DNA from: Amoebophrya sp. A120
Lineage: Eukaryota; Protista; Dinoflagellata
Assembly: GCA_905178155.1 (NCBI GenBank)
Contig: CAJINV010000001.1
Coordinates: forward strand, 7,410,612 to 7,474,611
Direction of reading: 5' to 3'
DNA: 64,000 bases
The position numbers and the translations under genes are program-made. A model generated the notes under the pieces. It was given only the letters and a program-made list of their open reading frames with translations. It searched no databases and was not told where the DNA came from. Shown piece by piece: positions 20,468 to 64,000 of this stretch. Within the stretch, counting starts at the first letter, position 1, and the number at the start of each line of letters is the position of its first letter.

Positions 20468-23400
20468 TCATTTGCGACCTTTCCTGTCCGCCCTGGAACC
20501 TTGACCCGCTTGATACCGCCTGTCTCTGGAACCCTTTCCCTTTCCTTTTCCGTGTGACCCCGCTTCGGAAATTTGCTGCGAAGGGTTCTGCGGAGGACCA
20601 CCGAAGAAGGCACTCTGTCCCCAGCCACCATGCATCTGCATCATCGGGTGAGGCGGAACAGCATATGGGAACGCGTTTCCCCACCCTTGTTGCGGACTGA
20701 CCCCCCAATTTGTATACGGACCGATTTCCGCCGCGCCCCCCATATTTGGCATCTGCGCCTGGTACGCCTGCGGACTCGTCGGATCAAGTGGTCCATCCGG
20801 TATCGACCCCGGAATGAAGTACACCGGCGCGACGATCTGTGCTTCGCCGGCAGCGGGCGTTGATCCCGCACTGGTGCCGTGTGCTGCCTTCTTCGGCCGC
20901 GCGTTTAGACGGGTGCGCATCCAAGATTCGTCCGCGTGGCCCGTCCCCTCCTGGGCTGTACTCCTGCCCGAGCGCGCGGTGGCCCAGCTCTGTGCAGAGT
21001 GCGCCCCTGAGGACCCCGACTCTGGCCCCGCCGATCGCGTTTGCGGTGCCGGCGTGCTTTCTGGAGGCTGCGTTTGTGCAGGCGTCTCGGGAGCGGGTTC
21101 GAACGGATCGTCAGCCGTGTCGTCGGAGTCTGAAGCGGGGTCCGGAAGGGACAACCCCGGCGGCGGTCTGAAGGGGTGGCCCCCGGTATTTTGAGGAGAC
21201 ATCGGGTCTGACAAAATCGACACCGAGTCTTTGGAGGTCTGCCGGTCCGGGAGCTGCAATTCAGGATCGTCGACAGAACCGTTTCCAAGATCGTTCGAAG
21301 AAGCACCCGGAGCGCTGGCAGATTCGTCGACACTCTGCTCTGGAGTTCCTTCGTGTTCTTGCTCCAGCATCAAATCGTCAACGGACTTGCTGGACTGCGC
21401 GACAGTCGCAGTTGCGGGGGTCGTCTGCGACCCTTTTCTACCTTGTTTGCTACCCAGGAATGGAGACATCAAAGGTGGAAACTCTGTGGGATTGCTGGCT
21501 GCTCCACCTGCGGATTCGCGCGGTGGGGCAGCGGGTCTATCGTCCCACACCCCTAGCACATCTTTCATCACGGGTCCGTTATTCATAAGGACGACTCTTT
21601 CGTCTCCACTTTCACCTCCGGCGGAACCCGGCTGACCAGCGTTTGCTTCCTCGTCATCCGCTGGCAGTCCGGCAATAGGAGGTGGCGCTGGCGGCGATAC
21701 CCGTTGCAAATCTTTCCGCTTACGCCGTCTGCCCGGACAGGACGAGGCTTGCGACAGCGTCGGGCCCCAGTTGGCGTCTCCACTCAAGGCGCTGCCGCGG
21801 CTATCAGGGTTAGTTGTCTTCCAAACACTAAAATCGGAGGCGCCACTGCCGCTGGCGGGCCGGTCTGGGACGTCCCCGGAAAAGAACGGGGCCTCGACTC
21901 GAAGACCACCGGCCTGCTCAGCGATAGGCGACTGCAAAGGCGCAGGTGAATTCCGCAAGTTCTTCCTGCCAGAAATCGAGTTTGAAACACTTGCAGGTAG
22001 GGACAAGGGCTTCCCTGCATGCACCTCGTCACCAACTCGTATGCAAAGAAAATCTCGATGGTGAGTGATGGAAAGCTCTTTCGTTCGATCAGGTGTGGAC
22101 TTTCTGCAACACTGTGGCGTAAAAAAATTGAAACATCATGCGAAGAACTCCGTGCGTAACCTTCGTACTTCCAACATGCAAAGTACCCGGAGAGAGATTC
22201 ATGCTGCTCCTTGACGAGCGTATGATTAGATGATTCAATGGTACGAACAAAGTCGTCGTGCCGGCAAGAAACGCTACTGCTTGTATCAAGATGCCACAAC
22301 TACTCCACCGCTGATGAAGAGCAGAGCATCCAGCACCCCAGCACAATTCCTTCTGCAAATACATAACTCTCGCATGGTCGTCTGAACCGAGGTTCCCTCG
22401 CGGAGATGAATCATTACTTGCGGCCTGTCGTGCAGCATGGGACGTGTCCGTAACTGCCAGCTCGGCCATGGCATCCACGATCGATTTGACGCGAACAGCA
22501 CTGCCTTTCGCTGACTCCTGCAAATCCGCGACCTGTCGTTCAGGCGAGATCCCCGGAGGAAGCACCGGCGGCGGGCTACTAAGCATACCGCCGTACCTAT
22601 GCCTAGCCCACGGGGGCAGCGATTCGATCGGCAACGGCGAAATTCGCGGAGGATGCGACGGAGGCGGGTTACTGGGCACGCCGACGACCGGATTCTGAGG
22701 CACCGTCGCTGGTTCGCCACTGATGTGCAAATGACCTTCCGGACCCACAGGACCAGTTTCTCCGACAAGTCCCGGCGGTGGGCCCACCAACGTTGCTACG
22801 CCCCCGGGAGGTGGCGGCGGAGGGCTGTGCGCTGGAGGTGGCGGACGCGCGTCGATGCGGTGCTGCAAAGTCGCAGGTTGTCCGTCGATTCGTCGCCCCG
22901 GATGAGCGTCGGGTAGCTCCGTCGTGGCGGAAGCTGCTGCGCCGGCCTCGCCCGCCGCGGAGGGACTTGATGCGTGTTCTCCCCGGGGACCACCAGGAGA
23001 AGCGGTTTTTGGCGCATTACCTTGCAGCTGAGCCTCGTCGGTCATTTCGTACCAAAGCGGAAGCACCAGGCGGTGTGGCTGCCACGAGGTCGGCGTGAAC
23101 GGACCGAATCGGTTGACCACCTCCGGATGGTTGTCGTAGTGGTCCAAGAAGGCATGCCACACGTTGTTGTTTTGCGCCGGTTCGTTGCGAGTGGGGACCT
23201 GCTCCTGCTTTTGGCCTGCGCCGGCTCGCGGCACGTGCAGGTCTTTCGTCCCCGCGAGGCCGAGCACGTCGCAAACCACGATCACCAAGTTCTTCGCGCG
23301 CGTAATGGCGACGTTCAACCGCGACTCGTTGTTCAAAAAGTCCCGCACCGACTTAAGACCCCAAGGACGCGTGCGCGACACCTCCACGATAATGACTTTC

Positions 23401-26400: not shown

Positions 26401-29400
26401 ATCTTGGACCAGACCGAAAAGGGCTTGGCCACCAAATAGGCCGGCACTCCGCGGTCATAGTGGCGTTGCACGACCTTTCGCCTAGCCGCGTTCGCCAGGG
26501 GCGACGCAGAAGTCGTTCCTTGCTTTTTCCTATCAAATGTAAAAGTGTCTGGGTCTGGAAGAATGCAACTTGTCATGCTAGATCTGAACCTTCGCTACCT
26601 GCCATACTCTAAAGGAGTTTTTTTCTGGCTTGAGGACCCCCTCCCACCCCCCCGATCTCGGATGTGCGTGAGCCCATAAAAGTCGTGAGACTTGGACATG
26701 CAAACTTGCGTGGGTGCTGCAGAGTCGCATGAAAAACAAAAAACTCTGAGCGGGCTGCACCACACATGCACGACCGAACGAGTAGGAAGTAATCGACAAG
26801 AGGCTGGAGCTAGAGGTGTGCGGCACCTCAGGTAACTTGCATTGGCGACAAGAAGATGAAATAATTTTGTTTTTTTGAATTGTCAGACATTTGCGTATTA
26901 CGGTACAAAACAGGTCAGCACTACCTCGATTGCGGTGCTTGCAAAGCGAAGCGGTAGCTGTAAGATGGATTTTTTGTTTGTCATCATGGAGCTCTAGTAT
27001 GTCCACATGAGTGTCGCCGGATCTTAGGGCCCATCTATGCACCCGCCTGGTGGAGCACGCTGTGTGCTAGGAACGGGGCCGGGCATAAAAAGCGGGGTGC
27101 GGCCCCTTGAATTACGTGGACTTTTTTCATGTATGCAGCCAAAAACGTCGTGTGTATTGCGCGGGGTGAGTGGATGGAGTCCTTGGGTGCGGCCCGCTGG
27201 AAACCACCACAACACCCACCTTGGCGCTGGTAAACAGAAACTGGGCGCTTCCGGGTGCGGCCCTTCAGCAGGTAAATATGGCGGCTGCCTTCAAGAGTAG
27301 TAAAATGTAGGAGCTAAAAGCCAAGAAGTATCTGTCAAAAACCCACCCAGCTCAGCCCGTTGGCAAGACGGAAAAAAAAACATCTGCCCCTGCAACCAAC
27401 AAATGCGGGATCCGCCACCTAGCGCTACAAAGATTCCAGAAGTAAGCAAGACGACACGAGAGAAATAAAAGGGTAGAGACCTAGATCTACGTGGGAACAC
27501 GTGGGAACGCGGGGGGAGCAGGGGGAGCGGGGACTTCCGCTACCGACAGCATCGGCAGCGAGGCCTAACGCCCCTCTGGGTGTGAGAAACGAGGGAGGCA
27601 CCTATAGACAGTCAAAAGACCATCCAGGATTGAGGAAGTGAGATTGGTACAATAAAATGTGACCAGGAGCGACTTGTTAGGAACACTCCAACAACCTCTA
27701 CCTACCACTGCCCTCGATTTCACTAAAGAGAAAGCCGAAGCTGACTCACCCCGAGTACGCTTCCCGAAGTCAGCTCATCCGCCCGTTTCCAAGAGCTGAC
27801 AACGAGGCAATGTCCTGAGGGGCCGTTGCGAACCTCCCCAATCCTGAACGTCATGTGGTTTCAGCTCTTAGAAACCGGCTGACGAACGAAAACGCACATC
27901 TCTGTACCCAGTGGCAAGTACAAGAGAGGCAGGGACATAGGGAGCACCGAACCGCACATCCAACTCGACCCTAGGTAACCCAGAGATCCTAGTCCCGGGA
28001 ATCTTGGGGACCACGCAACAGACGAGCGGCAAAACAAGGAAGGAAGCCACCACCAGCCAAGCAGCACGAGAGCGACAGCGAGGGGGTCTTGGCCGAAGCC
28101 GCTGACCCGGGAGCACCTCGCATGAAGCTCACACACCACAAGTCCCGGAGCAAGCTCCGATGGCGCCACCAACCCGTCTACTCACCCGAACGTGCAGGGG
28201 GCGACGACGCCGACCAAGCGAGAGCCTCACACAACGGGAATTTCCCGCAAGGCCTAATCGTCGACCTCGCTCACTGAGATGGAGGCGAGAACGGTCTCGG
28301 TAGGTAATCCAAAATGCGACCAGAACCAACCAACCGGACGCGGGAAGCGGCGACGACACACGCACTACGACGGGCCCAACAGACACCTACCAGACTGACC
28401 TCCTCTATTTGGGAGTCCGCGCCAACTCTATTTGGTGGCGGTCGGGTCAGGGCTCAATTTGGCTCATCTGACTCAGTCTGGGGCGCGCTGTAGAAGGCAA
28501 GGCGCACATGCTAGATCTGAATTGAATTGAATTGAATTGAAGTAGCGACGCCCCCTGACGTGCCTCGGTAGCCGATCGCTCTCTGAAGCATGTAAAAATC
28601 TGTGTTGCATGATTACCAAAAGTCGTCCAGTTTTGACCAAATCGGGAGCGAGTTTCTCATGCAGGATAGGCATGAGAGGGATCGCGCAGAATCTGTCATG
28701 CGAGGTCCTGCGTTCCAGACCTCACGGGTCATGGAAAAGCTGCATGACAAATCGCGCATTCTTCCAGACCCAGACATTTTTGCATTTGATATTTCCACGA
28801 CTTCGATCCAACCATTTCCGCACTGAGCTGGGCGCCTCTGCGCTGCGACGCTGTGTAGTCCTGCACCGTTTTGGAGAACTCTAGCGCAAACTGCCACTGA
28901 CGCCCGTCGTTCGTCTGTGTCAGTTGGTATATTTGCTCGACCAAAATGCGGACGAGAGAAAGCAGAAAGCCGGTGCCTATAGTCCGCAGGTACTGCGCGC
29001 TATACGCCAGCCTCCAGGCAACACGGCGCTCCTCCGACCCGTCAACGGTAGTGGGAAGCAGAATCGATTTCAGGGAACCCGGAACCCCCTCGGGCGCTCC
29101 GACCGAAAGCACCCGCGCGACGTCGTGTAATTCAGAAAAAGTTTTCAGAGTGGTCTGGGCCTGGGGGACACTCGTTTGTTCTGCGTGGTCTCCACCACCA
29201 ATCACCCCAACGGGGTACTTGGGGACGATACCGCCTCGGCGTCGTAGTTCTTCATTCCCCTCCTGCTTTTTTGGTTCATATACGTGAGTCTTCACTACTT
29301 CCAGGAGATCCTCGGTCAAAACAAGTCCCGAGTTTCTCTGTACCACCGTGGGGTTTGCGTGTGCTTTGGCCCTTTCGTGGATGCAGTGGACAACCTATCC

Positions 29401-41400: not shown

Positions 41401-44400
41401 TCGAATGCACGTAGTGTCAGAGAGCAAAAAGCAACGCCTTCATTGTCCGTTGTTAGCTGCCCCTGATTCGCTTCAGCCAAATTAGCTCCATTTCGACGCG
41501 TGTTTTACAAAAATCAACGTAAGTACTTAATCACACACCGCAATTGAAAAGCCATCTTTCTTCCGTAGCTGCAGCTTGATAGGGTGCCGTACGGCGCGTG
41601 CTCTTTGAAGGAAAGCGCCGCACAATCGCTTCCGATACCTTCAGCTCCAAAAACCATGCGTGAATCATCCGCAAGTTGGGCAGCAGTATGTCCTTTTCTC
41701 GCTGCGAATAATTGGTTGTAAACCTCAGGTACAAAGCCTCCGCCACTCGATCCCAGTCGGCGGCAGTCAAAGCATAGTACGGATACACGCTTATGCAAAG
41801 GAAATGAGTGCTCTTTCACAATCGCACTCGCAGCGCCAAAGGTCGGATTATGACGCTTTTGCATCTCGCGAGTGCTTGTACTTTGTGTTGCTACCTTTAC
41901 CTGTCCAATTTTCCACCTAGAACTTCTGCGCGCATGCTGCAGCAGGAGTTTCTGAAACCTGCTACAGGTAGTGACACATATCTGCAAATAATAAATGAAA
42001 TGATCCTTGCATCCCGACAACCTCAGCTAACGCCGTTTGTACGTCGGCGACTTTTATACACTGAGTCTACACGAGCATGCTTGTCTGCAAGTACTTAGTC
42101 AGTAGAGGACTCGTTTTTATTTCGCGTAACGTATCGGCGATTCGCTTTACTTCGTTGTTGTTTCGCCTGTTCCGCCGTGATTCCTGCCGGCAGCTCTTCG
42201 ATTACAAGTTCTGGCTTTGTTTCCGCCGCACGGGCTCGCAATTCCGCTGGTTCGCACCCCGTGGGCGCAAAACCCTCCCCCCGGACCTCGGCTTCGCCAG
42301 CCCGGTGGTGTCCAGGGAGGTCTTCCGCGTCATGCTCCTCAAGAACGCGGGTCTGCCGCGCAACATTTTGCCTACGAAGGGCCCGGGTCTGCGCGACCGA
42401 AGCCTCCAGATGCCAAGGGCAGAAGTCCTCCTGAGCACCGCCCACCGATGTCAGCAGATGCGGTGACTGCTCGAGAATATGCTGCAACTTGACAGTGACG
42501 CGCGAAAGGCGGTACATGGTCTGGTAAATCATTTCCTCGAACCTTTTGGCGACAGCCTCCGCTCGCGCAAACGCCACCGGCTCGCTCGCCCCCTCGAAAT
42601 AATCTTTAATAAAACGTTTTGCCGAGTCCTTCACGCCCACCAACACGCCGTTGCTCTCGTCGTTCTCCGCGCTCCTGTCTGCACGCCGGTCTCGAAGTGC
42701 ACGAAGCAGGTCTTGGTGCGACATTTGTGCATCCGTCTGGTCCAACTGCACCTTCAGAAGGACAAAGATGGACCATGCAACATGCTCTTGCATAGACTGA
42801 CCATACCCCTCAGGCAGCTTGCCCATGCCGAGCAGCTTACCCATGCCGAGAGGCAGCATTAGCTCAGTCGCGCGTGTGCCATCGAAGTTGACAATGCGGC
42901 TCACCATACTAAGCGGCCCACTCAGCAAATCCTGCAAAACCACCGCGCCGAGCATGTCCAAGAGGTCCGCCGCTTGCCCCGCGCCCTCTTGCATCGCGCC
43001 CTTGAATGGCTGCCTCCACCGCACGCGGAGGGCAGTTGTGTGCGCTGCAAGCACGATCTGGAGAAGCTCGCGCTGGTGCGCCAAGGCGAGTTCCAAGGGA
43101 ACTGCGTCCTCCTCGCTGGCAAGTACCGCACGCACGCGCTGATAGAATTCATTTTCGTACTGTGAATCGCCGGGTGACACGGCAGGAGACACCAAGCGAG
43201 CCTCCAGACAGGGCGACAACATTTCTAGATCGTAGTGCTTGAAGAGGCTGCGCAGCCCGGGAATGGCGTTTGCAACGCTGACATCACGGACCGCGACCCT
43301 ATTCGTCGCTTCCCCGAATTCGCCGGCGTCCACATCCATGCGGTCTGCTGCCGCGGAGGGATCCACCCCTACCGCTGGTGGGCCTGGAGTTCCATCCTCC
43401 TGAGGTGCCACCTGCGCTTCGCCGGGCGCTGCGGTTCGGGCGGGCTGCAAATCCGGCGTCTCGCCAATCGCTTCCGCCGGAGTGAGCGCAAGGGAAAGGC
43501 CGTAGGAGGGACCCAGCTGCCGCTTTTTGATCTGCAATATCTGGTGCACGACCGTCTCTGCGAACCTGCGGAACTTCATCTTCAACTGGGTGGCGGCCAC
43601 GCGCGCCCGCTCGCGCTCCGCGAGGGCCATACCGACGATTGTGTAGGTTTTGCCCGTGCCCGGCGGACCACGCACGAGCGTTAGTGGCTGTATCAAAGAT
43701 TTCTCCACGATTGTGCGTTGGCTCTCGTCCATGTTCGCAAAGTATGCGCTCTCGGCAAGAGTGGGGCTCAGCTCGTACTTCGCGCGGTTATGGGTCCGAG
43801 CGTCGTGCAGCATCTCCTGCATCTGTTGGTCTGCCATATAGTGCTCCTGCTCGACCAGCAGGCGGCGCAAGCCTCCGTACAGGGTACCCCCCGTGCTGCG
43901 GAGCGACAATCGAGAGAAGATGCTGGCGGGTCGTCCGTCGGAGAGCGAAAAGAACATACGTGGCGGCGGCGTCGTGAAAAGGTCGAAAGAACGACCTGCT
44001 CCCGTTGTTGCGAGCGTCCTCGAAGCCCGGACTGTGTCCTCTACGTGAAAGGGCAGCACCACGTCCCAGAATTCGAGACTATCCGGCTCGCCCAGGAAGT
44101 ACTTTCTTACGAAGGACCAGACCGAGACGCTGATCTTCTTTTCCGATTTGAAGAACGTCTCGGCGGTGGGATGCTGTGCAAGCCCAGTCGCCCCTTTGCC
44201 CCGCAGATCCGTCCAGTTCAGGAACTCATCCCGAAATGTGAGTGCCCCCTTCCAGAAGCTGGAGTTGGACGCCACGCGGAGACGCTGCGTCTTGGCACGC
44301 AGCTCTTGCGCTTGCTCGGCCATCGACGTCGCGTCGAAGAAGGTATCGCTCACGAACCGGTGGCCCGCCGCAAACGCGGCTCGCTGTGCGTCCGCGCTCC

Positions 44401-47400
44401 CCCCCTCGTCAGGGGCCGCTAGGTGCTGCGAAGTAGCTCCCCCCTGCGCGATAGACACGTCGTCTGCCAATTTCTGCTCGGCTACCTGGACGACTGCCGC
44501 AAGTGCCTCTGCCGCATACTCGTCGAAGTGCGCGGGTGTGAAGGTGTGCTCGAGTTGTTCGCGGGTCTGCGCCATCGCATCTTGCAGGGCGAACAGGTCG
44601 GCCCAGTAGTCCACCCCGTTCTGGCGCCTCTCATCTCCAGCGTGCGGATCCAGCAGGGGCTTGACGTCCCTAGAAAGCAGTTCCCCGTTGTCCCAGTGCT
44701 GAAAAATCCAGTCGGTGTTGCTGCGCAAACGGTTTGTAAATTCGGTGTTGATCCAGCAATTTCTCCTTGCACAGAAACCATCTATGGTGGCGAGGAGGTG
44801 TTCCACCTCCTGCTCGCGCAGCACCTGCCGTTCCTGGTTCTGGTACTCCGCGTAGGTTATCAAGTGTAAAAATGTCTGGGTCTGGAAGAGTGCGCGATTT
44901 GTCATGCTAAACAGAAGTGCGGCACACTTTGCCTCCCCCTTTGTAAACGGCCGATTTGTCATGCTGCTTTTCCATGACCCATGAGGTCTGGAATGCCGGA
45001 GCTAGCATGACAGATTCTGCGAGACCTTTCTAATGCCTATCCTGCATGAGAAACTCTCTCCCGGCTTGGTCAAAACTGGACGACTTTTGGCAATCATGCA
45101 ACACAGAGTTTTGCATGCTGCAGATTCAGGATGACAAGTTGCAATCTTCCAGACCCAGACATTTTTACATTTGATATAGGTCATGCGCAGCCGATTCCAG
45201 AACTCTTCGCTGGGCACCTTCTCCATGCGCAGGTAGGCCAAAAGGAGGCGGCGGTTCGCGTCCGTGCCGAACCGCAGCTTCGAGTAGAACAGCTCGCGCT
45301 GCTCCTCCTTCTCCTGGCGGTAGGTCGAGGTGCCGTCGCTAGGGTTTCCCGCCATCTCATCCAGCATGTCCTTCTCTCGATCGGCGGAGTCCAAATCCAC
45401 GTCCTCGTCGAGCCGCCACAGCACGCCCGGCTGCGTCTCGTGCAGAGGAACATCCCCAGCTTGTCTTTCATCAGTGTCGGGGTTCAACTTCGCCTCCGTG
45501 TGCACAAGCATGTAGTCCTCGTTCACGGCGTGCACCGTCGCTTCAAACATGCGACCCCTGGCGAAACTTTTGGACGCGTGACACCGCTCCCAGCGACCGC
45601 TTTCTTCCCCCCACGTAAGGATCGGACCAAGGTTGGGCACGGTCGCGCAGAAGTCCTGGGGCCACCGTCCGTCCGTATTTCGCTTCTTGGGGGGGCGCGC
45701 CCAGGTGTTCAGCTCCGATAAGATGAGTTTTGCCCCGGGCGCCCAATTCACTCGGCCAAGCTTCGCCGTTATCCGCTGTTTTGCCTTTATCAACCCCAAA
45801 CCTGCGTGGGCGTTTTCCGACATCCGATCCGTGTTGAGCGCGTCTTCGATGGTCGTCCTCGGGAAAAGCTGCGCCCAGCTCGCCCGTTGCACTTTTAGCA
45901 TGGTCCGTGACAGGTACTGCCCGTGCCCGCCAAACCCAGGCGCGAGCGTGACGAACGCCGCTCGCACAAGATTGCCCTCTCTTTCTTGGGCCGCCTCCTC
46001 TTTCTTGTCTACGTCGCAGAACGCAGCCGCCAATGCTTTATCAAATGCAAAAATGTCTGGGTCTGGAAAAATGCCAGACTTGTCATGCAGATTTTACATG
46101 ACCCATAGTGCCTGTAATGGATAACCTGGCATCACAGATTCTTAGCGGGCTTTCTGATGCCTATCCCGCATGAGAAATGCCCTCCCCATGTAGCACAAAC
46201 TGGGCCCCTCTTCCTGATCATGCAATACAGATTTTTTTAGAATGCAGAGACAGCATCACAAGTTGCAATCTTCCAGACCCAGACATTTTTACATTTGATA
46301 TGCTTGGACCTTGTCCGATTCGATCATCTTCGTCTTTCGGTTGATCTTATGCACTGCAAAAGTATCGCGCTCGTATAAATGCATGACAAATTTCCTCAGC
46401 ATGAGAAATAAAATTTGCAATGCGGATTGACCTTAAGAAAAGGATTTGTAATGCATGATTTCCATACGAGTACGATACTTACTTTTGCACAGGATAGATC
46501 TTCGACCAGGCCTCGTGCCACAGGCTGAAGATGTCTCCCCCGGGATCCTCCTGAAAAGCGCTCCTTGCCCCATTCTTACCCATGCCCGCCGAGTAAAATT
46601 TTCAACGTGGAGGAGCGCAAATTTGTTGGTGTGCAAAAAGCCACCGCAGTCGGGGCTGCGCCTCGCGTCTGCAGGAGCAGATGAAGGAAAAATGATCTTC
46701 GTCCTTTTTATGCAAAAAGTCGTTCTCATTTTTTGGCAACGTTGCAACCTCACATGCCTATCGTACTTCGGGGGCAGGGACACTTTTCCCTCTGATATCC
46801 GGAGCCCTGTCCGCGCCCGGCTGCGATCGTGACCTCCCCCCCGCCGGCGCTAGCTGGAGTTGCGAGTGTTGGCCGGCCAGTATTCATTACGGACGAAGGG
46901 GCCCCGCCCCCCTTGGAAGACATGCCAGCAACCGAAGAGTCGGAGCGAAGCGGTCCGCTACCACGTCGAACCAAGCCGACGACCTTCGGACACAGTATCC
47001 ACGTGTAAGACAATCAAGAGGAGCACACTTGTATATAAATCTAGACGGACACTTTCTGCGACAAACAGACTCAGAGTCATAGAACTACATGAAAAAATTC
47101 TACAAGATTTTTACACAAAGCACAGACATTCCGCGCAAGCGCGCTTGGTGCCTCATCAAGCCCAACTTGATTGCAATGTGGATTGAAAACAGCTGTTCTT
47201 TCCGTGGATACCGAGTGGCTCCAGAAACATCTTTCCCCCCGGTGCGGTAGAAGTGGCACCTGAAATGCCCGAGTGGGAACTCGTGGCGTCACTTTGGAGC
47301 TGTTTGAGCCTCCGGTAATTGAATCGCCGATCGTGGTTCCTTTTATCATGTGCGCGTAGAGACTCGGCTAAGCCCAGGTTCCCGAAGCGACTGCTAGTTC

Positions 47401-55013: not shown

Positions 55014-55354
55014 TGTTAGATCGATCCAGAACACAGGATAGACAACGAGCCACCCACGTAGCCACACGTGGGGCAGAGCCAGTGCAAATATAGTAGAAAC
55101 CAACCTAGAAGCAACCAAATACGTTCATCGTCAAGCTTAGCAGCATGGTGTTTGGTGCAGACAACGATCTACGCACCCACGACAGCAACGACGTACGATC
55201 TTACGAGCCTGGCGCTCTCCTCCTCTCCCTCTCTCCCCCTGGCGTTCTCTCAAGTGTCCGAGCCCGAGCCCTAGCGGCTGTAAATTCTACGAAATACAGG
55301 CGCACAATGGTGCAAATGTGCATGCTAGCGCATGCCATAGGCCCCAATTGTTAC
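55014..55354 (-). repeat. 3' LTR (341 bp, TGTAACA...CTAACA)
   Basis: TG...CA ends, preceded by the PPT. Its first 60 bp are repeated at 60280-60339. Confidence 0.8.
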
Positions 55355-56200
55355 AACCCCCTTTTTCAAAAATAGGTCTGTAGTCCCGTTACGAAAAAAG
55401 TAAAGTTGTAAACCGCTTGAGAGAAAGATGAAACTGTATGCAGGTGAACGAAGAGATTCGAACGGACACGACGCCAGGAGGGAGAGAGAACACGGACCAA
55501 CGCGAAATTTATACTCTGGCCAAATTGTACACAGGCGAGCTACCACCACTGGACCTAGTGTCCCCCTGCTGCTGTACGAAGGTTTGTAGTGGTGGTCGCG
55601 AAGAAAACGAAACGATTTATTTCTAGGAAGACAAAATAACGAAAACGGGGCAGAAGCTTTTGATACAAGATTGCATTTTGTAGACACGGAGCGAGAAACA
55701 GAAGAAGAAAATCATACATACGATACTACTTTTGGACGTCGAAACGAGAGAGAAATGCGAAACGTTTGAAACAGTTGTGAATTTTGCATGACAAACTATT
55801 TTGGTTATTTGGTTCAGCTCATAAAACTTGCTGTGTAATTTTCTAATTCTAAAATGTAAAAATAGAAACTTGCAATGCGAATTTGTTGAAGAGATGTAGA
55901 GATTTGTAATGCGGGAACGGAAATTCGATATGGATTTGCATTGCGAGAAACTAAAATCTTACACAGAAATCTCACAAAGGAGCGCAACTTGTAATGCTGA
56001 AATTTGTATTGCGAAAGCAGTGAAGTGAGAAACTAAAATCATACACGAACGTCTTGCCTAAAGGTGCGATCTGTAATGCTGAAACTGCGAAGCGCCCCGA
56101 TATTCCCCAACTTGTGGGGTTTGTCTCTTTACCCCCTTGGTCTTGCAGTAGCACCGGGGGAATGTGACCCGACCGCCCTCCGTCGTGTTTCCCCGTTTCC

Positions 56201-59200
56201 TCACGACTCCAACAGCGTAAGAGCCTCGGGAGGCAGCACAAATTTCGCATCTTGAAACTGCAAAAAGCCTCGCACCATGTCAAGATCGCACTTTGCCACT
56301 TCTTTCGTAAGTATATCGCTGGGGTTGTGTTTCCCCTTGATGTGGCAAAGGCAAAGATCGCCGTCTTCTACTAATCGCGATAGGTAGAAGTAATCTGCCC
56401 TGAGGTTTCGCTCGCTGGGCGACCTCGCTAGTGAATTTGTGCTGCTCCTCACCACGTTGTTGGAGTCGGAACAAACGATGAGAGGCTGGGCCGGAGAGGT
56501 AAGCCCGGATGCCACGCAGACGCCGCGGAAGTAAAGCAGCTCGCTAACCACGAGCCGCAGGGCGAGAAGTTCGGCCGAAGTGCTGGAACTAAAAACCCGG
56601 GCGGGCTTGGCGGAGTAGTGGGTGATAATGTTGTAGACCAATTTCTCATCCACCCCGCCCCCGCATGGTGTGCTTCCGCTTGTCGCTTGCTTCTTGTTGA
56701 CCAGGCACACCATAGCGCCGAGTCTAGGGACGAGACTTGCATCCACCAATCCCAGCAAAATGTCCTCCGTCTGCGCCGTCGGCTGGATGTGGATAACATC
56801 CTCCCCGTGCTGTTTCACCTGGTCGATGAGCTCATTGACCTCGGAAACCATTAATCCGTAGTCGTCGTCGCTGGCTTCGTCGTCAATTTGCCCCGCCAAG
56901 ATGCAAATATTTGCAACGAAAGCAATTTGCACCTTGGTCACCCAAAGCAACTCCCCCAAAGCCCGTCGCAGCGGCGACTTCCGCCGCCGGTTCTGCAGGA
57001 AGTGCTGCAGCTCGTGCTCCGATATAGGCTTCATATTTCGAATGAAGCTCTGCTGCCCGACCTTGAATCCTATTCCGCCCGCTGCTGCTGCCCGCGCGAC
57101 AAGCTTTCCGTCTTGGTAAAACTCAAATTGCTCCCGCTGGTCCGCTTCCACCGCTGCGTCGTGCTGCTCGCAGTGGATAGTCCTGCCGCAAAACGTGTCC
57201 GCCGTGCCAGGCAGCAGGCAGGTCCTGGATCCCGGTGGGAACTGCAGAAAAATTTTCTCCAGCGACCTGTGCGCCGCCGCGCTGCCACCGTAAAGCATGT
57301 CATCGACATGCACACCCAGAATCCCCTCGATTTCGTTGGATTCCAGGAGCGGGTCCTCGATGCTGGTCCGCAAAAGCGGATTTTGTGCGCGCCGCTCCTC
57401 GTCCCCGCTTGCTGCTGTTTCCTCTTCGTTGGTGCTGTTGCTTTCCCCCTGCTGCTGCTGCTCTGGTTTTTGTTTGGGGAAGTACCACAGGCAGGGGTCG
57501 TTGATGTCCTGTTTCCACCCAGCTTCGCGCAGGGCCTGAAACAGAACTTTTTGCCACGAAAGCGGAGCATCGGCCAGGCCGTAAAGGCACCGCTTCAAAC
57601 GGACGAAGCGATGGCCAAGGCCGAAGGCTGTGTTGCCCCTTATGCCCTCCGGAACCTCGAGCCAAACTGCGTCCTGCAGCTCCTTGCCGCGAAGAAAAGC
57701 CTGCGCAATGTCGGCAAGGTGGGCGTAGTGCTTGTTTTTCGCCAGCCAGTGCAGCACCACGAGGATGCTGCTATCTGCCACCGTGTGGCATCGTTTTTCT
57801 AACCCTTCCTCCAGCCGCCGATCCATGTAGCCCTTGGCGCACCACCGCATTTTGGCCTTGGTGAACTGCCCCGCCGAAAACTTCAGGGTGAAGACGATCC
57901 GGGACGACACCACGGAAACGTCTTCACCCTCCGGCCGCTCGTCCCGCTGGCTGGACAGGTCAAAAACGTCAAGGGCCTGGATTCCCTTGACCTCCGCCGC
58001 CCTTGCTTCGTCCACCAGGTGCCACAGGCCGTATTTGGCGATCTGCTGCAGCGTCAGCTCGACGCTGCACCCGTTCGGCGTGACTGCTTCCCAGTTCACG
58101 GCGGCGGGCTGCTCCACTTGCAAAAACAGATGATGGTCGTCGGGGCTGGGAATTTCGGTGGAGGGGTCAAAGACCTGAAATGCAGTTTTTGGCCCGACCC
58201 GAAACGCGATAGTGTGCTTGCCAAGCTGCCCCGGCACCCTGCAACCCCTGCGGAAAACTTTCGCCTCGACGACGTAGGCGCTGCCGTCGAATCCGCTTGC
58301 CGTGCCGCTTACTGGCTTGCCGTTGATCAACGTGTTGAGCTCTGTCACGATGGGGTCGCAGAAGGAGGAGCGAAATACGGTCTGGCGGCCCCGCTGCGCA
58401 ATCAGCTCCATCAAAAACTTGGAGTTGGTGTCGATGCTCCGCAGCTGCGTACGCCAGTCTTCCAGAGTCTCCAGAACTCTCTCTTGCCCGTCCTTTTCCG
58501 CTTCCGCAAGGTAAAGATGTGGCCCGTCCTCCACCAGTTGCGCGCACCGTGAAGTCGTCCCCGCGACAAAGTCCTGCACCGAAGTCGCCAGGGTTGCGAC
58601 CGTGTTCCCCGTGCTTTCCGCAATGTCGAAAGTGCTGTACGCCGCGCCGCGGTCGTCAATTGTAGCGAAGCTGTCGCTGGCCGCCCCTTTTGCAAAGAGG
58701 TCCGCGCTGCTGGTCAGGTAAAGCCGTCGTGCTTTCGTCGGAGGCTCGGTTGGTGGTTCCATCGGGATCGGCGAGCCAAAAATCTCGTCTTCCTCCCGAC
58801 GCGCTTGTGTGTCCAACTGCTCGCGGCGCAAAGGTGAAGCTGCGGCTTCAGGTTGTGGCAGGGATGGAAGGAGCGTTTCCTTCTGGTTACTTGAAGAAAC
58901 TGCTGGTGGGAGAACAGGCGGCCCCTGCTGATTCTTGGCCCCGTGGGGTTTTGTGCTTGGCGCCGCTGGGAGTGGTAAAAGGGGGAGAACAGTAGCCGCA
59001 GGTTTGGTTTTTCGCTGTTTCTTCTTGTTCTCTTCGCCCCTCACGATCTTCTTCGGCCTAGAAGGCGGGTTTTTGTCGTCAGGCAAGTCGGCAGCAGCGT
59101 CCGCGCGGTTCCGCAGTGCTGGCTTTGGGTTTTTCGGAGTGGGGACAAGCATCCCCGGTAGGGTTCGGAATTCTAGTGGCGCCGTCATGTACTCCGACAG

Positions 59201-60292
59201 CTGCACGCCGGGCTTGATGTCCGCCGCCGCAAAAACGAACTTCTTCACTTGTGGCGCCCGCAGCACCACAATCCTGTTACTCCCCGACGGTCTCACCATC
59301 GCCTCCTGTCGGTGTGTGTCTACGCCGACACAAGTCCCAACCTGCCGCCAGTTTGCTGTTCCCGCGTGCCAATGGTCAGAATTTTTGTCGTGCGTCCGTA
59401 AAATTCTGACCATTTCGCCCCGCTTGATGTCTTCCAGGCTAGTAAGCGACCGCGAAAGCTTGTAGCCCTTATTGAAGCGCCGGATCTTGTCCAAAATCTC
59501 CCGCCGCTGGACCTCCAAGGCAAGCCGTTTTTGTTCCTGCAGCAATTTTTCCATATGCCGCATGACTTGCTTCGTTGCCTTGCCGTCGTCGTTTTCGCAG
59601 TGGCCGTAGTGGCAGTTGTCCGCTGCGTAAACCGTTCCCCGCACGCCGGGGCATGTGTTCAAAAGCCCCTCGGTATACTGAAGGATCTTGTCCTTCAGCT
59701 CAAACTGGTCCGCGTCCAGTTTTCGGCAGTTGTAGATTACGTCCACCAGGTCCCGCACTGCGCCGCTGATGTTTCTCATCCCCACTATTTCCTCCAGGAG
59801 CGCCAGCTTCGTCCCGCCAGTGATGAGGAGCACCTTGTTGAGGGTTTTGTTGAATTTCGGATGTGCCCGCTCCTCCTTCCCCAAGCACCAGGGGGAGGCG
59901 TACGGCACCGGGACGCCCTGGACGTCGTTATTGGCGCAAAAATTCTCGACGTTCTGGTTGAGGTTGTCCGACTTTGGGTCGAACATGAAAAAGCGCGGAA
60001 GCCCGCCGGCCTTGGTCTTGAACGCGAGGAGAGCAGCCGGAACCTGGGGCGGAGGTGGTTCCGACTCCTTCCCGACCTTGTCCGGGAGGTGGTGGTCGAT
60101 CAGTGCTAGGCTACGCTTTTGCGACCCAAAATCGTAAAGGTGGTAGACGATCCCCATCGCCGTGTTGACCGAATCGCCGCCCCAAAGCACTCGCGGCTTG
60201 GCGCCGAACTGTGACCACCCGACCGGCCAAAGTATTTCGCGGCAGCGGTTGAAGCTTGCGCACTCGCTGCGCACGAATTTACAGGCGCACAA
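56201..60292 (-). CDS. pol: Copia-type Pol: integrase core, reverse transcriptase and RNase H
   Basis: IN: WGGDSV..YDFGSQK..FMFDPKS..FCANNDV..PYASPWCLGKEER. RT: KMRWCAKGY, ADIAQAFL, LKRCLYGLADAPLSW, DPCLW, VHVDDML. RH: LVDAS, SSTSAELLAL, CSDS, HIKGKHNPSDILTK. Confidence 0.93.
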   Translation of the reverse strand: MCACKFVRSECASFNRCREILWPVGWSQFGAKPRVLWGGDSVNTAMGIVYHLYDFGSQKRSLALIDHHLPDKVGKESEPPPPQVPAALLAFKTKAGGLPRFFMFDPKSDNLNQNVENFCANNDVQGVPVPYASPWCLGKEERAHPKFNKTLNKVLLITGGTKLALLEEIVGMRNISGAVRDLVDVIYNCRKLDADQFELKDKILQYTEGLLNTCPGVRGTVYAADNCHYGHCENDDGKATKQVMRHMEKLLQEQKRLALEVQRREILDKIRRFNKGYKLSRSLTSLEDIKRGEMVRILRTHDKNSDHWHAGTANWRQVGTCVGVDTHRQEAMVRPSGSNRIVVLRAPQVKKFVFAAADIKPGVQLSEYMTAPLEFRTLPGMLVPTPKNPKPALRNRADAAADLPDDKNPPSRPKKIVRGEENKKKQRKTKPAATVLPLLPLPAAPSTKPHGAKNQQGPPVLPPAVSSSNQKETLLPSLPQPEAAASPLRREQLDTQARREEDEIFGSPIPMEPPTEPPTKARRLYLTSSADLFAKGAASDSFATIDDRGAAYSTFDIAESTGNTVATLATSVQDFVAGTTSRCAQLVEDGPHLYLAEAEKDGQERVLETLEDWRTQLRSIDTNSKFLMELIAQRGRQTVFRSSFCDPIVTELNTLINGKPVSGTASGFDGSAYVVEAKVFRRGCRVPGQLGKHTIAFRVGPKTAFQVFDPSTEIPSPDDHHLFLQVEQPAAVNWEAVTPNGCSVELTLQQIAKYGLWHLVDEARAAEVKGIQALDVFDLSSQRDERPEGEDVSVVSSRIVFTLKFSAGQFTKAKMRWCAKGYMDRRLEEGLEKRCHTVADSSILVVLHWLAKNKHYAHLADIAQAFLRGKELQDAVWLEVPEGIRGNTAFGLGHRFVRLKRCLYGLADAPLSWQKVLFQALREAGWKQDINDPCLWYFPKQKPEQQQQGESNSTNEEETAASGDEERRAQNPLLRTSIEDPLLESNEIEGILGVHVDDMLYGGSAAAHRSLEKIFLQFPPGSRTCLLPGTADTFCGRTIHCEQHDAAVEADQREQFEFYQDGKLVARAAAAGGIGFKVGQQSFIRNMKPISEHELQHFLQNRRRKSPLRRALGELLWVTKVQIAFVANICILAGQIDDEASDDDYGLMVSEVNELIDQVKQHGEDVIHIQPTAQTEDILLGLVDASLVPRLGAMVCLVNKKQATSGSTPCGGGVDEKLVYNIITHYSAKPARVFSSSTSAELLALRLVVSELLYFRGVCVASGLTSPAQPLIVCSDSNNVVRSSTNSLARSPSERNLRADYFYLSRLVEDGDLCLCHIKGKHNPSDILTKEVAKCDLDMVRGFLQFQDAKFVLPPEALTLLES

Positions 60293-60339
60293 TGGTGCAA
60301 ATGTGCATGCTAGCGCATGCCATAGGCCCCAATTGTTAC
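60280..60339 (-). repeat. Truncated 5' LTR remnant (60 bp)
   Basis: Identical to 55294-55353. Confidence 0.85.
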
Positions 60340-60350
60340 TTTCCGCAGAT

Positions 60351-63300
60351 GACAGGGCGAAGCGGGTAGCTCAAGCGGATAACTGGGACGGTTTTCATTT
60401 TTTTTGAAAATATTCGGGGAAAAAAACTGGCCGCCCGACGCGCGAGAGTGCGCAAAATTGCAGCCCAAGCTCCGTTGTGGGGCTTGGGCTGCAATTTTGC
60501 GCTCTTGGCGGCTTGCTTCCTCCAAAGCACAAATTTGCGCTGCGCAGCGCAGATTTGTGCCACGCGCGCCACAAATCCGGCCGGCACGGAGCAAGTGCGA
60601 CTAGAAATGCACTGGCAATGCAAGTTCTGCCTTCTCAGTGAAATTCTCGCTGGGGGCGCGCTGGTGTCGCAAGCTAAAAGAGCGCGGGCAAGTATTGAAA
60701 TAACTTAAACCAATACTAATGGTCTTCGTTGTTTCAATACTTGCGCGGGTTCGGCTTGTCTCTGAGGCGGTGCCATCAACTTGGCGCCGCCTCAAAATCA
60801 AGCCGAGCCCGCATGGTGTGCTCAATCCAAAGGGAGGCCGGTGCCACGCACACGATAAAAAAAAAAGTAAATATATGCACGCTTTTTATTTTATTAAAAA
60901 ACCCAATGGCACCCAGAAGCGAAGGACGACGCTATGGTGGCGGTGCCACCCGGTGCCATCCGGGTGGCACCGGTTTGCTGAGTCGAGGCCTGTGACGCGA
61001 AACAGCACGCCACGGATGTGGTTTGCTGTGCCGGCGAGCCGGATTTCAATTTTGCGCGATGCGGCGCTCTTTTTTGCCTTTATGCGTGAGTGCGTCACAA
61101 CTCTGAAAATTTTGCAGCATAGAGGCCGTCGTAGCACGCTATGAGCGCTTCTTTGCTTCAGAATCTTGAAGCGGCCACGAGGTTCGCCAGACCCTTCTTC
61201 AGGCTCAAGAACGGAACGCAAGGGGGTAAAAGAGGAAAAGCGCGAAAAAGTATTAAAGTAGGCGAAGGGAATACTCATGGCGCCTCCGCCCCTCTTGGCG
61301 AATAAAAGGGGAAAGGGGCGCAGAACCACGGTGGGCGTGCGGCGTTGATATGCCGCCCTTGCCGGCGCGCGACCTCAAGATGCCTCCGCGGGCTTACTCA
61401 TTGCCGGCGCCTGGCCTTCTAGGCGCCCGACGTGCGCGAGACACGGCCCGCGCCACTAAGCCTCGCGCCAGCGCTCCGCGTGGCCCTTAGTATTGGTCGG
61501 CGCCATTTTAATACTTTGGCTTGCGTTCCTCTCGTTCTGCCTGCTTCGCCGCCTTGGTGCCAATCCCTCGGGGCCCCTGTCCCAATGTGGCAGCGGGCGG
61601 GCGGGGGAACGCAGCCTCCCCCACCTTCGGAGCACCCATCGGGGATCGCCTGCACCAATCGGAAAGCCCTGCAGTTCCTTGGCAGTGCGGTTTCACCTCC
61701 GCGGGGCCCCTGTCCCAATGAAGGCTCCCCCACGGCAGGGGACTCCTGGCGTCGCCACTTTCGGGTGGGAGCAGCATTGGGACAGGGGCCCCAAGGAATT
61801 GACACCGCGCAAAGAGATTCCCATGCGCGGCGATGTCGCCAGATCTCGCCTCCTGGCGGGCTGGGGAACGCAGCGCGCCCAAGCATGTGAGCCCGCATTG
61901 GAACAGGGGCCCCATCGCAATGGCACCGCCAAAGGCCAGAGCTGGGCTTGCGTTGCAGATCAGCAGCGCAGGGCTGGAGACCCCGCCGAGAATGCCTCTG
62001 CCGTGCGTTTCTACCTGGAAGCCCGGGCGTGGGAACGCATTGAGCAGGCATCCGCAGCGCATTACCAGCAGGAAATCCAGCGGGCGCCGCCTTTTCAGTG
62101 CGATTCTGGCCTTCAGGTCTGGACTTCGACTTGCGTTGCAACTTTGCAACGCAAGTCCGGATCTGGAGCAATTTGCGTTGCAGTTTGCAGTGCAGGGTGG
62201 ATCTGCAACGCAAGTTGTGCGCTGCCCTAAGTATTGACTTAATTTAAATCAATACTCATAACGCACGGCCGCCCTCCTGGCCACATTTCCAGCTGGATTC
62301 CCGGGCGGGAATCAAGCTGGGATGCTTTTCGCCGGCGTTTTCAGGTGGATTCCCAGGCGGGAATCCGATTGGGTATGCTCTTCGCCAGCGTTTCCATCTG
62401 GAAATCCAGCTGGAAACGCATTGGGCAGGCACCCGCAGCGCCCTTCCAGCTAGAATTGCATAGAGAGGGCGTCCTCAGCTGGAACTCCAGCTGAGGACGC
62501 CTCCTCAGTGCATTTCTAGCCGCAAATCCAGCCGGGAAGCCAACTGGTAACGCAGCCGAAAACGCCTGCACTGCCGGAAGAGTATTGATTTAGGTTAAAT
62601 CAATACTAAAGACGCGGACTGGATGACAGGGCGCGGAGCCTCGGCAGGTACAGAGCCAGGCGGAAGCTGCAGCACGTTTGTGCAGCAGGCTGACGCCGGC
62701 ACACGGGGAGGAGAATAGAGGCTGGGACCGCGTGTGAATTTGCAGAACAAGTCGGCCCCCGGGTGGATTTGTGCTGCAAGTTCCCGCGATGCAGATATGG
62801 TGACTTCCTGTCCCCAGTGTCAATTTGCAATGCAGGTGGCAGCCTGAAGCTGCAGCGCAAATTGCAGACGCCCAGGAGAGAGTCGCCGCAAGTCCATTTG
62901 CAGTGCAGTTTTGCAACGCAAGTCGACTCATCCTCCGGGTGTCGGGCGAAAACCGGAATGCCCGGTTGAAACAGAGCCAGGGCGAGGCTGCGGCACATTT
63001 GTGCTGCAGGTTCACGGTGGCACACTGGGAGGAGAATGACGGCTGGGATCCCGTGCGAATTTGCAGCACAAGTGAATCTGCCCCCGGGCAGATTTGTGTT
63101 GCAAATTCGCACGGGATACGCGTCTCAAGGTTTCCACTCGGGGAACGGGGTGCGCAGGGCCTTGCATTTCCTGGCTCTTTTATGTGCCGGACTGCAATTC
63201 GTTTCCGACTGAGTTCGGAAATGCATTGCAGTCCGGCACCTAAAAGAGCCAGGAGACGTTCTTTCAGAAGGACCAGTATTTCTGACAGCAAATTTGCAAT

Positions 63301-64000
63301 GCTGCATTGCAAATTTGCCCGTCAGATCTGGCGAGTTCCTGTTCCCGATTCGCGCTGCAGGATGGCCACTTTCGACGAAAGTGGCATCTTGCAGCGCAAA
63401 TTGCAGACGCCCAGGAGAGAGCCATCGCGAGTCCATTTGCAGTGCGATTTCGCACTGCAAATCGACTCGCCCCGCGGAAGCCCGGCTGCAACGGACGGGC
63501 ATTCCGTTTTTCGCGTTTTCAGCTCGATTTCCAGGCGATTCGTTTCAGTCTTCCGTTTCACCCCTGACAGGGTGAAACGGGTAACTGAAACGGATAGCTG
63601 GGACGGTTTTCATTTTTTTTGAAAATATTCGGGGAAAAAAACTGGCCGTCCGGCGCGCGAGAGTGCGCAAAATTGCAGCTCAAGCTCCGTTGTGGGGCTT
63701 GAGCTGCAATTTTGCGCTCTTGGCGGCTTGCTTCCTCCAAAGCACAAACTTGCGCTGCGCAGCGCAGATTTGTGCCACGCGCGCCACAAATCCGGCCGGC
63801 ACGGAGCAAGTGCGACTAGAAATGCACTGGCAAGGCAAATTCTGCCTTCTCAGTGAAATTCTCGCTGGAGGCGCGCTGGTGTCGCAAGCTAAAAGAGCGC
63901 GGGCAAGTATTGAAATAACTTAAACCAATACTAATGGTCTTCGTTGTTTCAATACTTGCGCGGGTTCGGCTTGTCTCTGAGGCGGTGCCATCAACTTGGC
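60351..64000. repeat. 3,215-bp period non-coding repeat: one unit plus the start of the next, modular and rich in internal sub-repeats
   Basis: 60351-60785 recurs at 63565-64000 with high identity. It could be a tandem macro-repeat or the direct termini of an element, and the window edge prevents distinguishing these. Confidence 0.85.
60691..63932. other. Six 27-bp palindromic sites AGTATT-N15-AATACT at 60691, 61249, 61489, 62230, 62581 and 63906
   Basis: Identical 6-bp outer arms and identical length. The 62581 site is a perfect 12-3-12 palindrome (AGTATTGATTTA GGT TAAATCAATACT). Confidence 0.85.

Follow-up and report, generated by a model that had tools for sequence, protein, structure and literature searches.

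A low-copy, non-coding TIR transposon family of Amoebophrya sp. A120 with an internal 27-bp palindromic motif

A 3.2-kb array of non-coding modules punctuated by 27-bp palindromes lies close to the end of the window, the whole stretch of 64,000 nucleotides analysed here. This array represents a single copy of a cut-and-paste transposon with terminal inverted repeats (TIRs) that is non-coding and low in copy number; a second copy follows it head-to-tail. The 27-bp motif is an internal hallmark of this TIR family and is unrelated to the element's own termini. The palindromes belong to the family as a conserved internal motif, probably serve as a protein-binding site, and are not the seams of recombinase-built cassettes. 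For the joint reading, a TIR element whose internal motifs are putative sites of a dimeric DNA-binding protein, we consider the chances to be roughly even.

Structure and insertion of the element

The element in the window consists of the following features, given with their coordinates and, where one applies, their strand.

60350..60352, TGA, the left copy of a putative 3-bp target duplication, the right flank of which falls outside the window; other copies have matching 3-bp flanks
60353..63566, plus strand, copy 1, a 3214-bp non-coding TIR element running from CAGGG to CCCTG, with colinear copies that have the same termini
60353..60383, plus strand, 5' terminal inverted repeat, mutated here at 3 of 31 positions; it includes two subterminal AA(A/G)CGG hexamers
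60680..60752, 73-nt palindrome that includes site 1 and a third half-site, CAATACT (60735-60741); DNA fold -20.9 kcal/mol, z -7.6
60691..60717, site 1, AGTATTG-N13-CAATACT, core not self-complementary
61249..61275, site 2, with A at arm position 7, core not self-complementary
61489..61515, site 3, core not self-complementary
62230..62256, site 4, at the position of "site E" of other copies
62581..62607, site 5, in the sole subrepeat copy present here; a near-perfect palindrome with a 12-bp stem
63534..63566, plus strand, 3' terminal inverted repeat, accompanied by subterminal CCGTTT/CGTTT repeats; its sequence is the same in 7 of the 9 3' ends of the genome
63567..63567, single A joining the 3' end of copy 1 to the start of copy 2; contig C288 has the same head-to-tail joint
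63568..64000, plus strand, start of copy 2, which reaches the window end; site 1 is repeated at 63906-63932

The head-to-tail copies follow each other with a period of 3215 bp and are 96-97% identical. Both ends carry the terminus CAGGG(G)TGAAACGG in inverted orientation, forming an imperfect TIR of ~30 bp with one indel, accompanied by subterminal AAACGG repeats; the 5' end CAGGGTGAAACGG matches the reverse complement of the 3' end, CAGGGGTGAAACGG. Genome-wide, 10 5' ends and 9 3' ends were found on at least 8 contigs (control patterns, 0), corresponding to about 10 copies in the 115.5-Mb genome of Amoebophrya sp. A120. Copies on contigs C14, C3, C2, C13 and C1 (5.76-5.77 Mb) are colinear from unit position 1-4 to 3215, where homology stops; the copy at C1:5,763,530-5,771,199 measures 7.7 kb.

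Insertion is documented by the flanks of these copies. The 3-bp target duplication is perfect in four of five (TCG, TGA, TGC and ATT), the fifth having ACA/ATA. The C3 copy interrupts a palindrome that is intact, with a single TGC, at 13 or more other places (control, 0), and the C4 copy represents a paralogous empty site for the C3 insertion, being 92% identical over 1219 bp past the insertion point. One copy is nested inside another family member. Transposable elements are abundant in the neighbourhood of the element. The long open reading frames of the window as far as position 60.3 kb lie mostly on the minus strand, and the GC skew changes sign near the element.

Internally, the modules differ in motif content from one inter-site segment to the next, as the initial annotation had described: GGTGCCAC-type motifs, GGGGCCCCTGTCCCAATG in both orientations, CCAGCTGG palindromes and TTGCA-rich duplicated blocks. 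The only module that changes in copy number is a subrepeat of 236-289 bp, present once in the window copy and three to four times in others. The lengths of indels between copies are not multiples of three. Furthermore, the element is packed with other, unrelated palindromes, the apices of which differ between copies yet stay palindromic.

Rfam searches, covering the whole window at the gathering threshold and positions 60200-64000 at an E-value threshold, returned only sub-threshold matches to generic miRNA-like hairpins. Scans for bacterial-type promoters and terminators yielded no excess over shuffled controls. No read of three RNA runs labelled as the same species fell on 58600-64000, nor on the neighbouring retrotransposon, so that these runs do not constitute a valid test.

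Distribution of the 27-bp motif

Six exact AGTATT-N15-AATACT sites with fixed spacing are present in the window, starting at 60691, 61249, 61489, 62230, 62581 and 63906, which confirms the positions first annotated; 100 dinucleotide-preserving shuffles of the window contained none. A scan of the A120 genome returned 40 exact sites against 1 for a reversed control pattern, and 59 against 1 when 7-mer arms with at most one mismatch were used. Nearly every genomic site lies inside a member of the TIR family, with 1-9 sites per copy. In the window, 11 copies of the 7-mer half-site fall within the 3.65 kb of element, against 4 in the remaining 60 kb. Several large contigs contain site clusters, in many cases one or two each; the large contigs C6-C8 and C10-C12 have none, while C1 and C3 have several. 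Contig C27 also has a cluster, at about 339-350 kb, with two identical sites at a distance of 9.26 kb. The degenerate, oppositely oriented site that had been annotated at 60715-60741 stands in so far as an overlapping half-site exists there (CAATACT at 60735), although it is better called a third half-site.

Other assignments of the motif were considered and set aside. It is not an ordinary transposon terminus, being internal and unlike the element's own ends. An introner-like mini-transposon (TAT...ATA ends, 5-bp duplication) conflicts with the AG and CT on either side of every site and with the absence of a duplication, and was rejected. Treating each inter-site module as a MITE of its own, bounded by half-sites and duplicating the 3-bp centre, is not supported, since the would-be tips are variable and no module has been gained or lost exactly at the sites. 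A metagenome scan for two sites 205-235 bp apart matched 11 contigs. We take these as chance matches and not as relatives, since in the one contig that was read (L047, AT-rich, with telomere-like repeat ends) the 27-mer lies within a ~78-bp repeat resembling a coding repeat.

Architecture and conservation of the sites

The motif consists of two inverted 7-bp half-sites, AGTATTG and CAATACT. Their spacing is 13 bp in all 40 pairs, and of 75 exact half-sites 68 belong to a pair. There is almost no variation at positions 1-7 and 21-27, and within the core T11 is found in 36 and A17 in 39 of 42 sites. The flanks fall into eight classes of context, at least six of which lack detectable mutual homology. 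Flank homology is common to site 1 and the subrepeat sites, and at least some sites are therefore paralogues. Part of the motifs stem from tandem amplification of the 236-289-bp subrepeat, each unit of which carries one motif and an AAACGG hexamer that begins 21 bp ahead of it.

Between orthologous sites, identity amounts to 0.93-1.00 in the arms, 0.51-0.92 in the cores and 0.63-0.93 in the flanks, the high value of the arms being partly an effect of ascertainment. A multiple alignment of every homologous row, misaligned ones included, gives difference fractions of 0.101 (arms), 0.144 (cores) and 0.127 (flanks); these values do not differ significantly. The cores are as AT-rich as the arms, yet change much more. 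Watson-Crick pairing at the inner positions equals the expectation from base frequencies, leaving no hairpin covariation. On DNA folding, three of the five window sites reach only -0.7 to -2.7 kcal/mol, and some sites form 12-bp stems.

Individual sites have diverged in several ways. Site 2 of the C3 copy has decayed, with three arm mismatches. A site ~300 bp from the 3' end, present on C14, C2 and C288, is lost from the window copy; on C288 its core is wholly different within flanks that are 93% identical. One core of the C14 copy has been replaced by sequence that lies, as its reverse complement, 23 bp downstream, and site 4 shares the left half of its core with site E of other copies but differs in the right half. 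In the C14 copy, each of the three leading subrepeat sites is preceded by an AAACGG that begins 21 bp upstream of it (1978, 2237 and 2486 versus 1999, 2258 and 2507).

Superfamily and comparison with known systems

The ends of the element resemble those of the maize hAT transposon Ac/Ds, whose terminal repeat reads CAGGG followed by TGAAA, and AAACGG is repeated in both subterminal regions. Transposons of the hAT superfamily make 8-bp target-site duplications and have a transposase with a C-terminal dimerisation domain. The element does not fit in its duplication, which is 3 bp instead of 8 bp, with no match between the 8-bp flanks of the two sides; Ac also lacks 27-bp internal palindromes. 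PMC13635294, citing Kunze and Starlinger 1989, gives AAACGG as the transposase-binding subterminal motif of maize Ac.

The 3-bp duplication is shared with En/Spm (CACTA), which likewise repeats a short motif many times, partly as inverted pairs. In En/Spm these are subterminal arrays of TnpA-binding motifs, bound by a protein that the element itself encodes; they occupy the subterminal 200-300 bp, whereas the 27-bp motifs extend over the whole element. CACTA/En-Spm (CMC) membership is not supported: the duplication fits, but the termini are CAGGG and not CACTA. PIF/Harbinger elements combine a TWA-type 3-bp duplication with a DDE_Tnp_4 transposase; the duplications TCG, TGA, TGC and ATT are not of this type, and PF13359 (DDE_Tnp_4) had no match in the A120 genome, in a search whose control gave matches; this assignment is not supported either.

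Searches of the A120 genome for Transposase_21 and for the hAT dimerisation domain PF05699 gave 0 matches, but the control of the former was silent and that of the latter was silent in every genome, so that neither search tests anything. Neither three Pfam families nor a short pattern of the TIR tip led to a larger partner element, and Farhat et al. (PMC7789003) report no transposase in A120.

Satellite-bearing MITE-like elements share the non-coding interior between TIRs, the variable internal subrepeat (here 236-289 bp, 1 to 4 copies) and the head-to-tail dimers; the element differs from them in keeping one short palindromic motif across otherwise unrelated modules. The introner elements of Amoebophrya, in turn, are non-autonomous, inverted-repeat-rich TIR elements whose transposase is not known (Farhat et al. 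2021, PMC7789003). The CAGGG family occurs in the same genome and is likewise non-autonomous, bounded by TIRs and rich in inverted repeats. In contrast to the introner read in the window, which has TAT...ATA ends and a 5-bp duplication, it has CAGGG...CCCTG ends and a 3-bp duplication, and it is ~10 times longer, with ~10 copies.

Interpretation of the motif

The sites combine conserved inverted half-sites with a fixed spacing and an unconstrained spacer, as expected of a binding site. From the sequence, a dimeric DNA-binding protein appears to fit this combination better than a nucleic acid structure does, because the cores vary freely, hairpin covariation is absent and the sites are often poor hairpins. 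The suggestion of the initial annotation that a dimeric protein binds here thus survives as a prediction. We postulate that a dimeric sequence-specific protein, most likely the transposase of the family or an accessory protein, would bind each pair of inverted 7-bp half-sites as double-stranded DNA, and that the motif may have been retained by selection in those element lineages that went on transposing. The variable cores would then be unconstrained spacer, changing by point mutation and by clustered events resembling template switching. Against a binder stand the negative outcome of the searches for a transposase or other binding protein, the spread of the motifs over the whole element, known transposase-binding sites lying in subterminal regions, the non-significant difference between arms, cores and flanks when all rows are aligned, the decay of site 2 in the C3 copy and the loss of the 3'-end site from the window copy.

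Alternative explanations

The motifs may have no protein partner at all and be remnants of amplified subrepeats in a genome prone to palindromes, kept and reshaped by template switching, by cruciform or hairpin formation and by a low mutation rate of AT-rich sequence. We regard this as somewhat unlikely. It would agree with the many unrelated palindromes that keep their symmetry while their apices change, with the C14 core taken from 23 bp downstream, with the exchanged C288 core between nearly identical flanks, with the flank homology of site 1 and the subrepeat sites, and with the outcome of the unbiased conservation test. It does not readily account for a spacing of exactly 13 bp in all 40 pairs despite many indels in the flanks and the rest of the element, or for cores that are as AT-rich as the arms and much more changed; moreover, homology-driven conversion would need arms longer than 7 bp, hairpin formation is poor in three of the five window sites, and the inner positions have no excess of pairing. 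The last two observations also bear on a function in RNA, in which short hairpins would indicate where a long non-coding transcript of the element is processed or terminated. Some sites do form 12-bp stems, and transposon-derived introns in this organism depend on inverted-repeat pairing (PMC7789003), but with inner stem positions that do not covary, a majority of window sites that barely fold, Rfam matches confined to generic sub-threshold hairpins and, though no valid test, no RNA reads on 58600-64000, we consider such a role very unlikely.

The initial annotation had interpreted the array as cassettes assembled by a site-specific recombinase. In dif, lox and FRT, 6-8 bp separate the cleavage points, and the two partners must agree in their overlap. 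The motif resembles dif, loxP, FRT and integron attC in its inverted arms, variable centre and several sites per locus; at least 12 proteins encoded in the genome exceed the Pfam cut-off for Phage_integrase, and two cores look block-exchanged (half of the core in site 4 versus site E, the whole core in the 3' site of C288). That a tyrosine-type recombinase acting in trans assembles or rearranges the array, or once did, is nevertheless highly improbable. The spacer is 13 bp long as opposed to 6-8 bp and differs between neighbouring sites, and among five full-length copies on different contigs neither the order nor the orientation of the modules varies. Of the indels between copies that measure at least 40 bp, not one is bounded by site centres at both edges, and contigs of a DNA run contain no joints at sites. 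The 13 tyrosine-recombinase matches all lie at least 0.64 Mb from any cluster, and no serine recombinase (resolvase) was found in the genome, in line with the annotated lack of a recombinase gene in the window. An invariant module order with no junctions at the sites is the outcome that the initial annotation had itself named as contradicting its cassette proposal. Its other suggestion, a chromosome-structural locus, gives way to a TIR transposon insertion with 3-bp target duplications. We see hardly any probability that the sites belong to a host chromosomal element (centromere-like, an origin or a strand-switch region) bound by a dimeric host protein and are not a transposon feature. The presence of clusters on several large contigs, often one or two each, would suit it, as would the minus-strand bias of the reading frames and the nearby change in GC skew; yet the clusters have TIRs and 3-bp target duplications, one of them with paralogous empty sites, many large contigs (C6-C8, C10-C12) lack a cluster while C1 and C3 have several, and one copy is nested in a family member in a neighbourhood rich in transposable elements.

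A further possibility, which we judge decidedly unlikely, is an undescribed TIR lineage with Ac-like ends and a 3-bp duplication, whose mobilisation would need a second dimeric DNA-binding or recombination protein at the internal 27-bp sites. Such a protein could bring the ends of the 3-kb element together by folding it, or resolve head-to-tail multimers; if it cuts within the site, the block-wise exchanged cores would be its traces.

Significance

Amoebophrya genomes contain transposon-derived introns, the mobilising enzymes of which have not been found (PMC7789003). The CAGGG family constitutes a second, unrelated type of TIR element in A120; its ends are clear, its duplication measures 3 bp and its insertion is proven. 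A supposed recombination cassette array thereby becomes an ordinary kind of object with one unexplained detail, the 27-bp motif. As a very specific candidate protein-binding site, this motif may serve as bait for a transposase or accessory protein.

Ends, copies and insertion of the 3.2-kb unit

Copies of the 3.2-kb non-coding unit follow one another at a period of 3215 bp, with 96% identity between 60350-60649 and 63565-63864; the second copy reaches the end of the window. The window, C1:7,410,612-7,474,611 of the assembly, is rich in transposable elements. The elements discussed here are the following.

26531-28791: introner-type element with TAT...ATA ends, a TTTCC direct repeat and TGTCATGC-like subterminal words
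approximately 55295-60339: copia-like retrotransposon directly left of the unit, whose 1363-aa minus-strand ORF carries an RVT_2 domain
60353-63566: first copy of the unit, followed by a single A and then by the start of the next copy

When the unit was searched against the genome, colinear copies were found on contigs C14 (91-93% identity), C2 and C13 (77-86%), C3 (74-94%) and at C1:5.76-5.77 Mb, with partial copies on C4, C5 and C288. Similarity begins at unit position 1-4 and ends at position 3215 in every copy. Several copies (C14, C13, C5) have 100-N assembly gaps inside or beside them, so their lengths and subrepeat numbers are uncertain. The 5' terminus is CAGGGTGAAACGG and the reverse-complemented 3' terminus is CAGGGGTGAAACGG; the inverted repeat that they form is about 30 bp long, allowing one indel, and AAACGG hexamers recur within it. 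Genome-wide, ten 5' ends and nine 3' ends were found, and none with control patterns. Of five copies, four have the same trinucleotide on both sides of the element (TCG, TGA, TGC and ATT), and the fifth is flanked by ACA and ATA.

The strongest evidence of insertion comes from the C3 copy. This copy splits a palindrome whose flanks, rejoined with a single TGC, give a 34-mer that is intact at at least 13 other genomic places (up to 3 mismatches; control 0). One intact 34-mer lies within the related C4 copy, where the downstream sequence shares 92% identity over 1219 bp with the DNA that follows the C3 insertion; the C3 copy is thus nested in another family member, with TGC duplicated on insertion. 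Taken together, the unit is very probably a non-autonomous transposon with terminal inverted repeats and a 3-bp target-site duplication. The host of the C3 copy (C3:9,936,330-9,940,204 and flanks) comes from a related 2.6-kb subfamily, the C4 type, and is truncated at its 5' end. The copy sits at the centre of the 34-bp palindrome, and the same palindrome is arrayed with 80-bp spacing at C2:11.259-11.262 Mb and C13:2.2025 Mb. Insertion at the palindrome centre may reflect a preference for palindromic targets.

At the head-to-tail joint of the window (63566-63568), the 3' end, one A and the 5' end follow one another, and the identical joint occurs in a different subfamily at C288:114-116. The joint is two bases shorter than expected from simple duplication across the TGA target repeat. 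Recurrent formation of a circle-type or microhomology joint could explain it. A contig assembled from a DNA run matches 61711-62880 with no differences; its depth is about 104 and that of the adjacent retrotransposon about 86, which makes a long tandem array unlikely.

Comparison with known families

The ends of the element resemble those of Ac/Ds, but its 3-bp duplication departs from the 8-bp hallmark of hAT. A 3-bp duplication fits both CACTA and Harbinger; however, the termini differ from those of CACTA, and the duplications are not of the TWA type of Harbinger. Domain searches of the genome, in which two controls were silent, found no matching transposase domain. Introners and the element family are different systems: unlike the element, the introner at 26531-28791 has TAT...ATA ends and a 5-bp duplication. 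The copia-like retrotransposon is bounded by two identical direct repeats of 60 nt, at a distance of 4985 bp; Gozashti et al. 2025 (PMC12130899) report copia/gypsy-like ORFs in A120 elements whose ends are nevertheless DNA-transposon-like.

Elsewhere in the window, two long minus-strand ORFs of 1495 and 955 aa (22089-26576 and 42095-44962) carry AAA_12 and AAA_11 helicase-type domains, respectively, and G+C falls sharply to 0.32 at 8001-10000, compared with 0.5-0.6 elsewhere. Pieces of 50-75 bp from the CCAGCTGG-rich module (62388-62460 and 62476-62535) have 81-90% matches at at least 12 other loci on C2, C3, C4, C7, C8, C12 and C15, often in pairs spaced about 150 bp; this pattern suggests that a further dispersed family of small repeats shares the hairpin.

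Distribution and anatomy of the 27-bp motif

The six AGTATT-N15-AATACT sites of the initial annotation (60691, 61249, 61489, 62230 and 62581, with the repeat of the first at 63906) are present; 100 shuffles of the window that preserve dinucleotides gave 0 matches to the pattern. Between sites, the segments do differ in their internal repeats, as had been noted, and contain many local palindromes. Across the 115,520,608-base assembly, 40 exact sites were found compared with 1 for a control pattern, nearly all of them inside element copies or their relatives on C3, C4 and C27, at 1 to 9 sites per copy. Within the window, 11 occurrences of the 7-bp half-site fall in the 3.65 kb of element sequence and 4 in the remaining 60 kb. 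The motif is an internal hallmark of the element family. At the gathering threshold, Rfam detected no RNA family in the window, and a looser threshold returned weak generic hairpin matches only. An AT-rich metagenome contig (L047) with telomere-like repeat ends contains the same 27-bp word in a tandem repeat of about 78 bp, adjoining an apparent kinase-like gene; we regard this as a chance match, unrelated to the element.

Among 42 sites, positions 1-7 and 21-27, which form the half-sites AGTATTG and CAATACT, are nearly invariant. Within the 13-bp core, 36 of the 42 have T11 and 39 have A17, and the other positions vary. With any spacing from 0 to 60 allowed, half-sites are 13 bp apart in 40 of 40 pairs, other values arising solely from a third half-site at site 1 (60691); 68 of 75 exact half-sites are paired. 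No hairpin covariation was detected, as inner Watson-Crick pairs match the base-frequency expectation (positions 9/19: 16 observed, 16.1 expected). Folded as single DNA strands, three of the five window sites reach only -0.7 to -2.7 kcal/mol, and two fold well (-4.5 and -8.1). The palindromic look of many cores is explained by a longer preferred half-site in the subrepeat copies, AGTATTGATTTA.

Flanks compared with the motif masked form eight classes, at least six of them without detectable mutual similarity; the flanks of site 1 cluster with those of the subrepeat sites. Identity among orthologous sites, which were selected by their arms, is 0.93-1.00 in arms, 0.51-0.92 in cores and 0.63-0.93 in flanks, and base composition does not account for the arm-core difference, since cores are as AT-rich as arms. 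In a less biased multiple-alignment count, diluted by misaligned rows, the difference fractions (arms 0.101, cores 0.144, flanks 0.127) do not differ significantly. Site 2 (61249) has decayed in the C3 copy. Given the arm-based selection and the non-significant count, the main argument for constraint is that the same arms recur with unchanged spacing across unrelated contexts; it does not rest on substitution counts.

Module order and core replacement

The initial annotation suggested that a site-specific recombinase may have built a cassette-like array at these sites. Cassette shuffling is absent: the five full copies share one order and one orientation of the modules. Copies vary in the number of a 236-289-bp subrepeat with one site each (one in the window; three to four in C14, C3, C2 and C288) and in a few other indels. 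In pairwise alignments, where gap placement inside tandem repeats is arbitrary, indels of at least 40 bp never have both edges close to the centre of a site; the nearest edges lie 17 and 30 bp away, and the opposite edge of each is at least 72 bp off. A 326-bp block restricted to C2 and C13 carries its own site, but no site lies within 295 bp of the block's left edge. Contigs assembled from a DNA run likewise contain no joints at sites. The genome has 13 Phage_integrase matches (12 above the Pfam cut-off), and no resolvase was found in it; the nearest Phage_integrase match is 0.64 Mb from any site cluster. This outcome is the first of those that the initial annotation had named as refuting its recombinase reading.

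Cores change in several ways. C288 differs throughout the core of the site that lies about 300 bp from the 3' end, with flanks 93% identical to C14 and C2, and site 4 of the window (62230) shares the left half-core but not the right with the same-position site of other copies. At C14:1,003,267, the left core of a subrepeat site has given way to the reverse complement of sequence lying 23 bp downstream, a change absent from the sister repeats. The change resembles a template switch and has the signature that such a switch would be expected to leave in a quasi-palindrome. Apices of other palindromes in the element also differ among copies, with palindromy kept.

Proposed function of the motif

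Half-site sequence and spacing are kept, and spacer and hairpin ability are not; on these grounds we tentatively propose, at somewhat less than even confidence, that a dimeric DNA-binding protein recognises the motif. The AAACGG word of the terminal repeats recurs in the C14 copy, where it begins 21 bp ahead of all three leading subrepeat sites. In maize Ac, the transposase binds this hexamer as a subterminal motif (PMC13635294). The subrepeats therefore look like arrays of protein-binding words, and by analogy with Ac, these putative arrays point to the transposition machinery.
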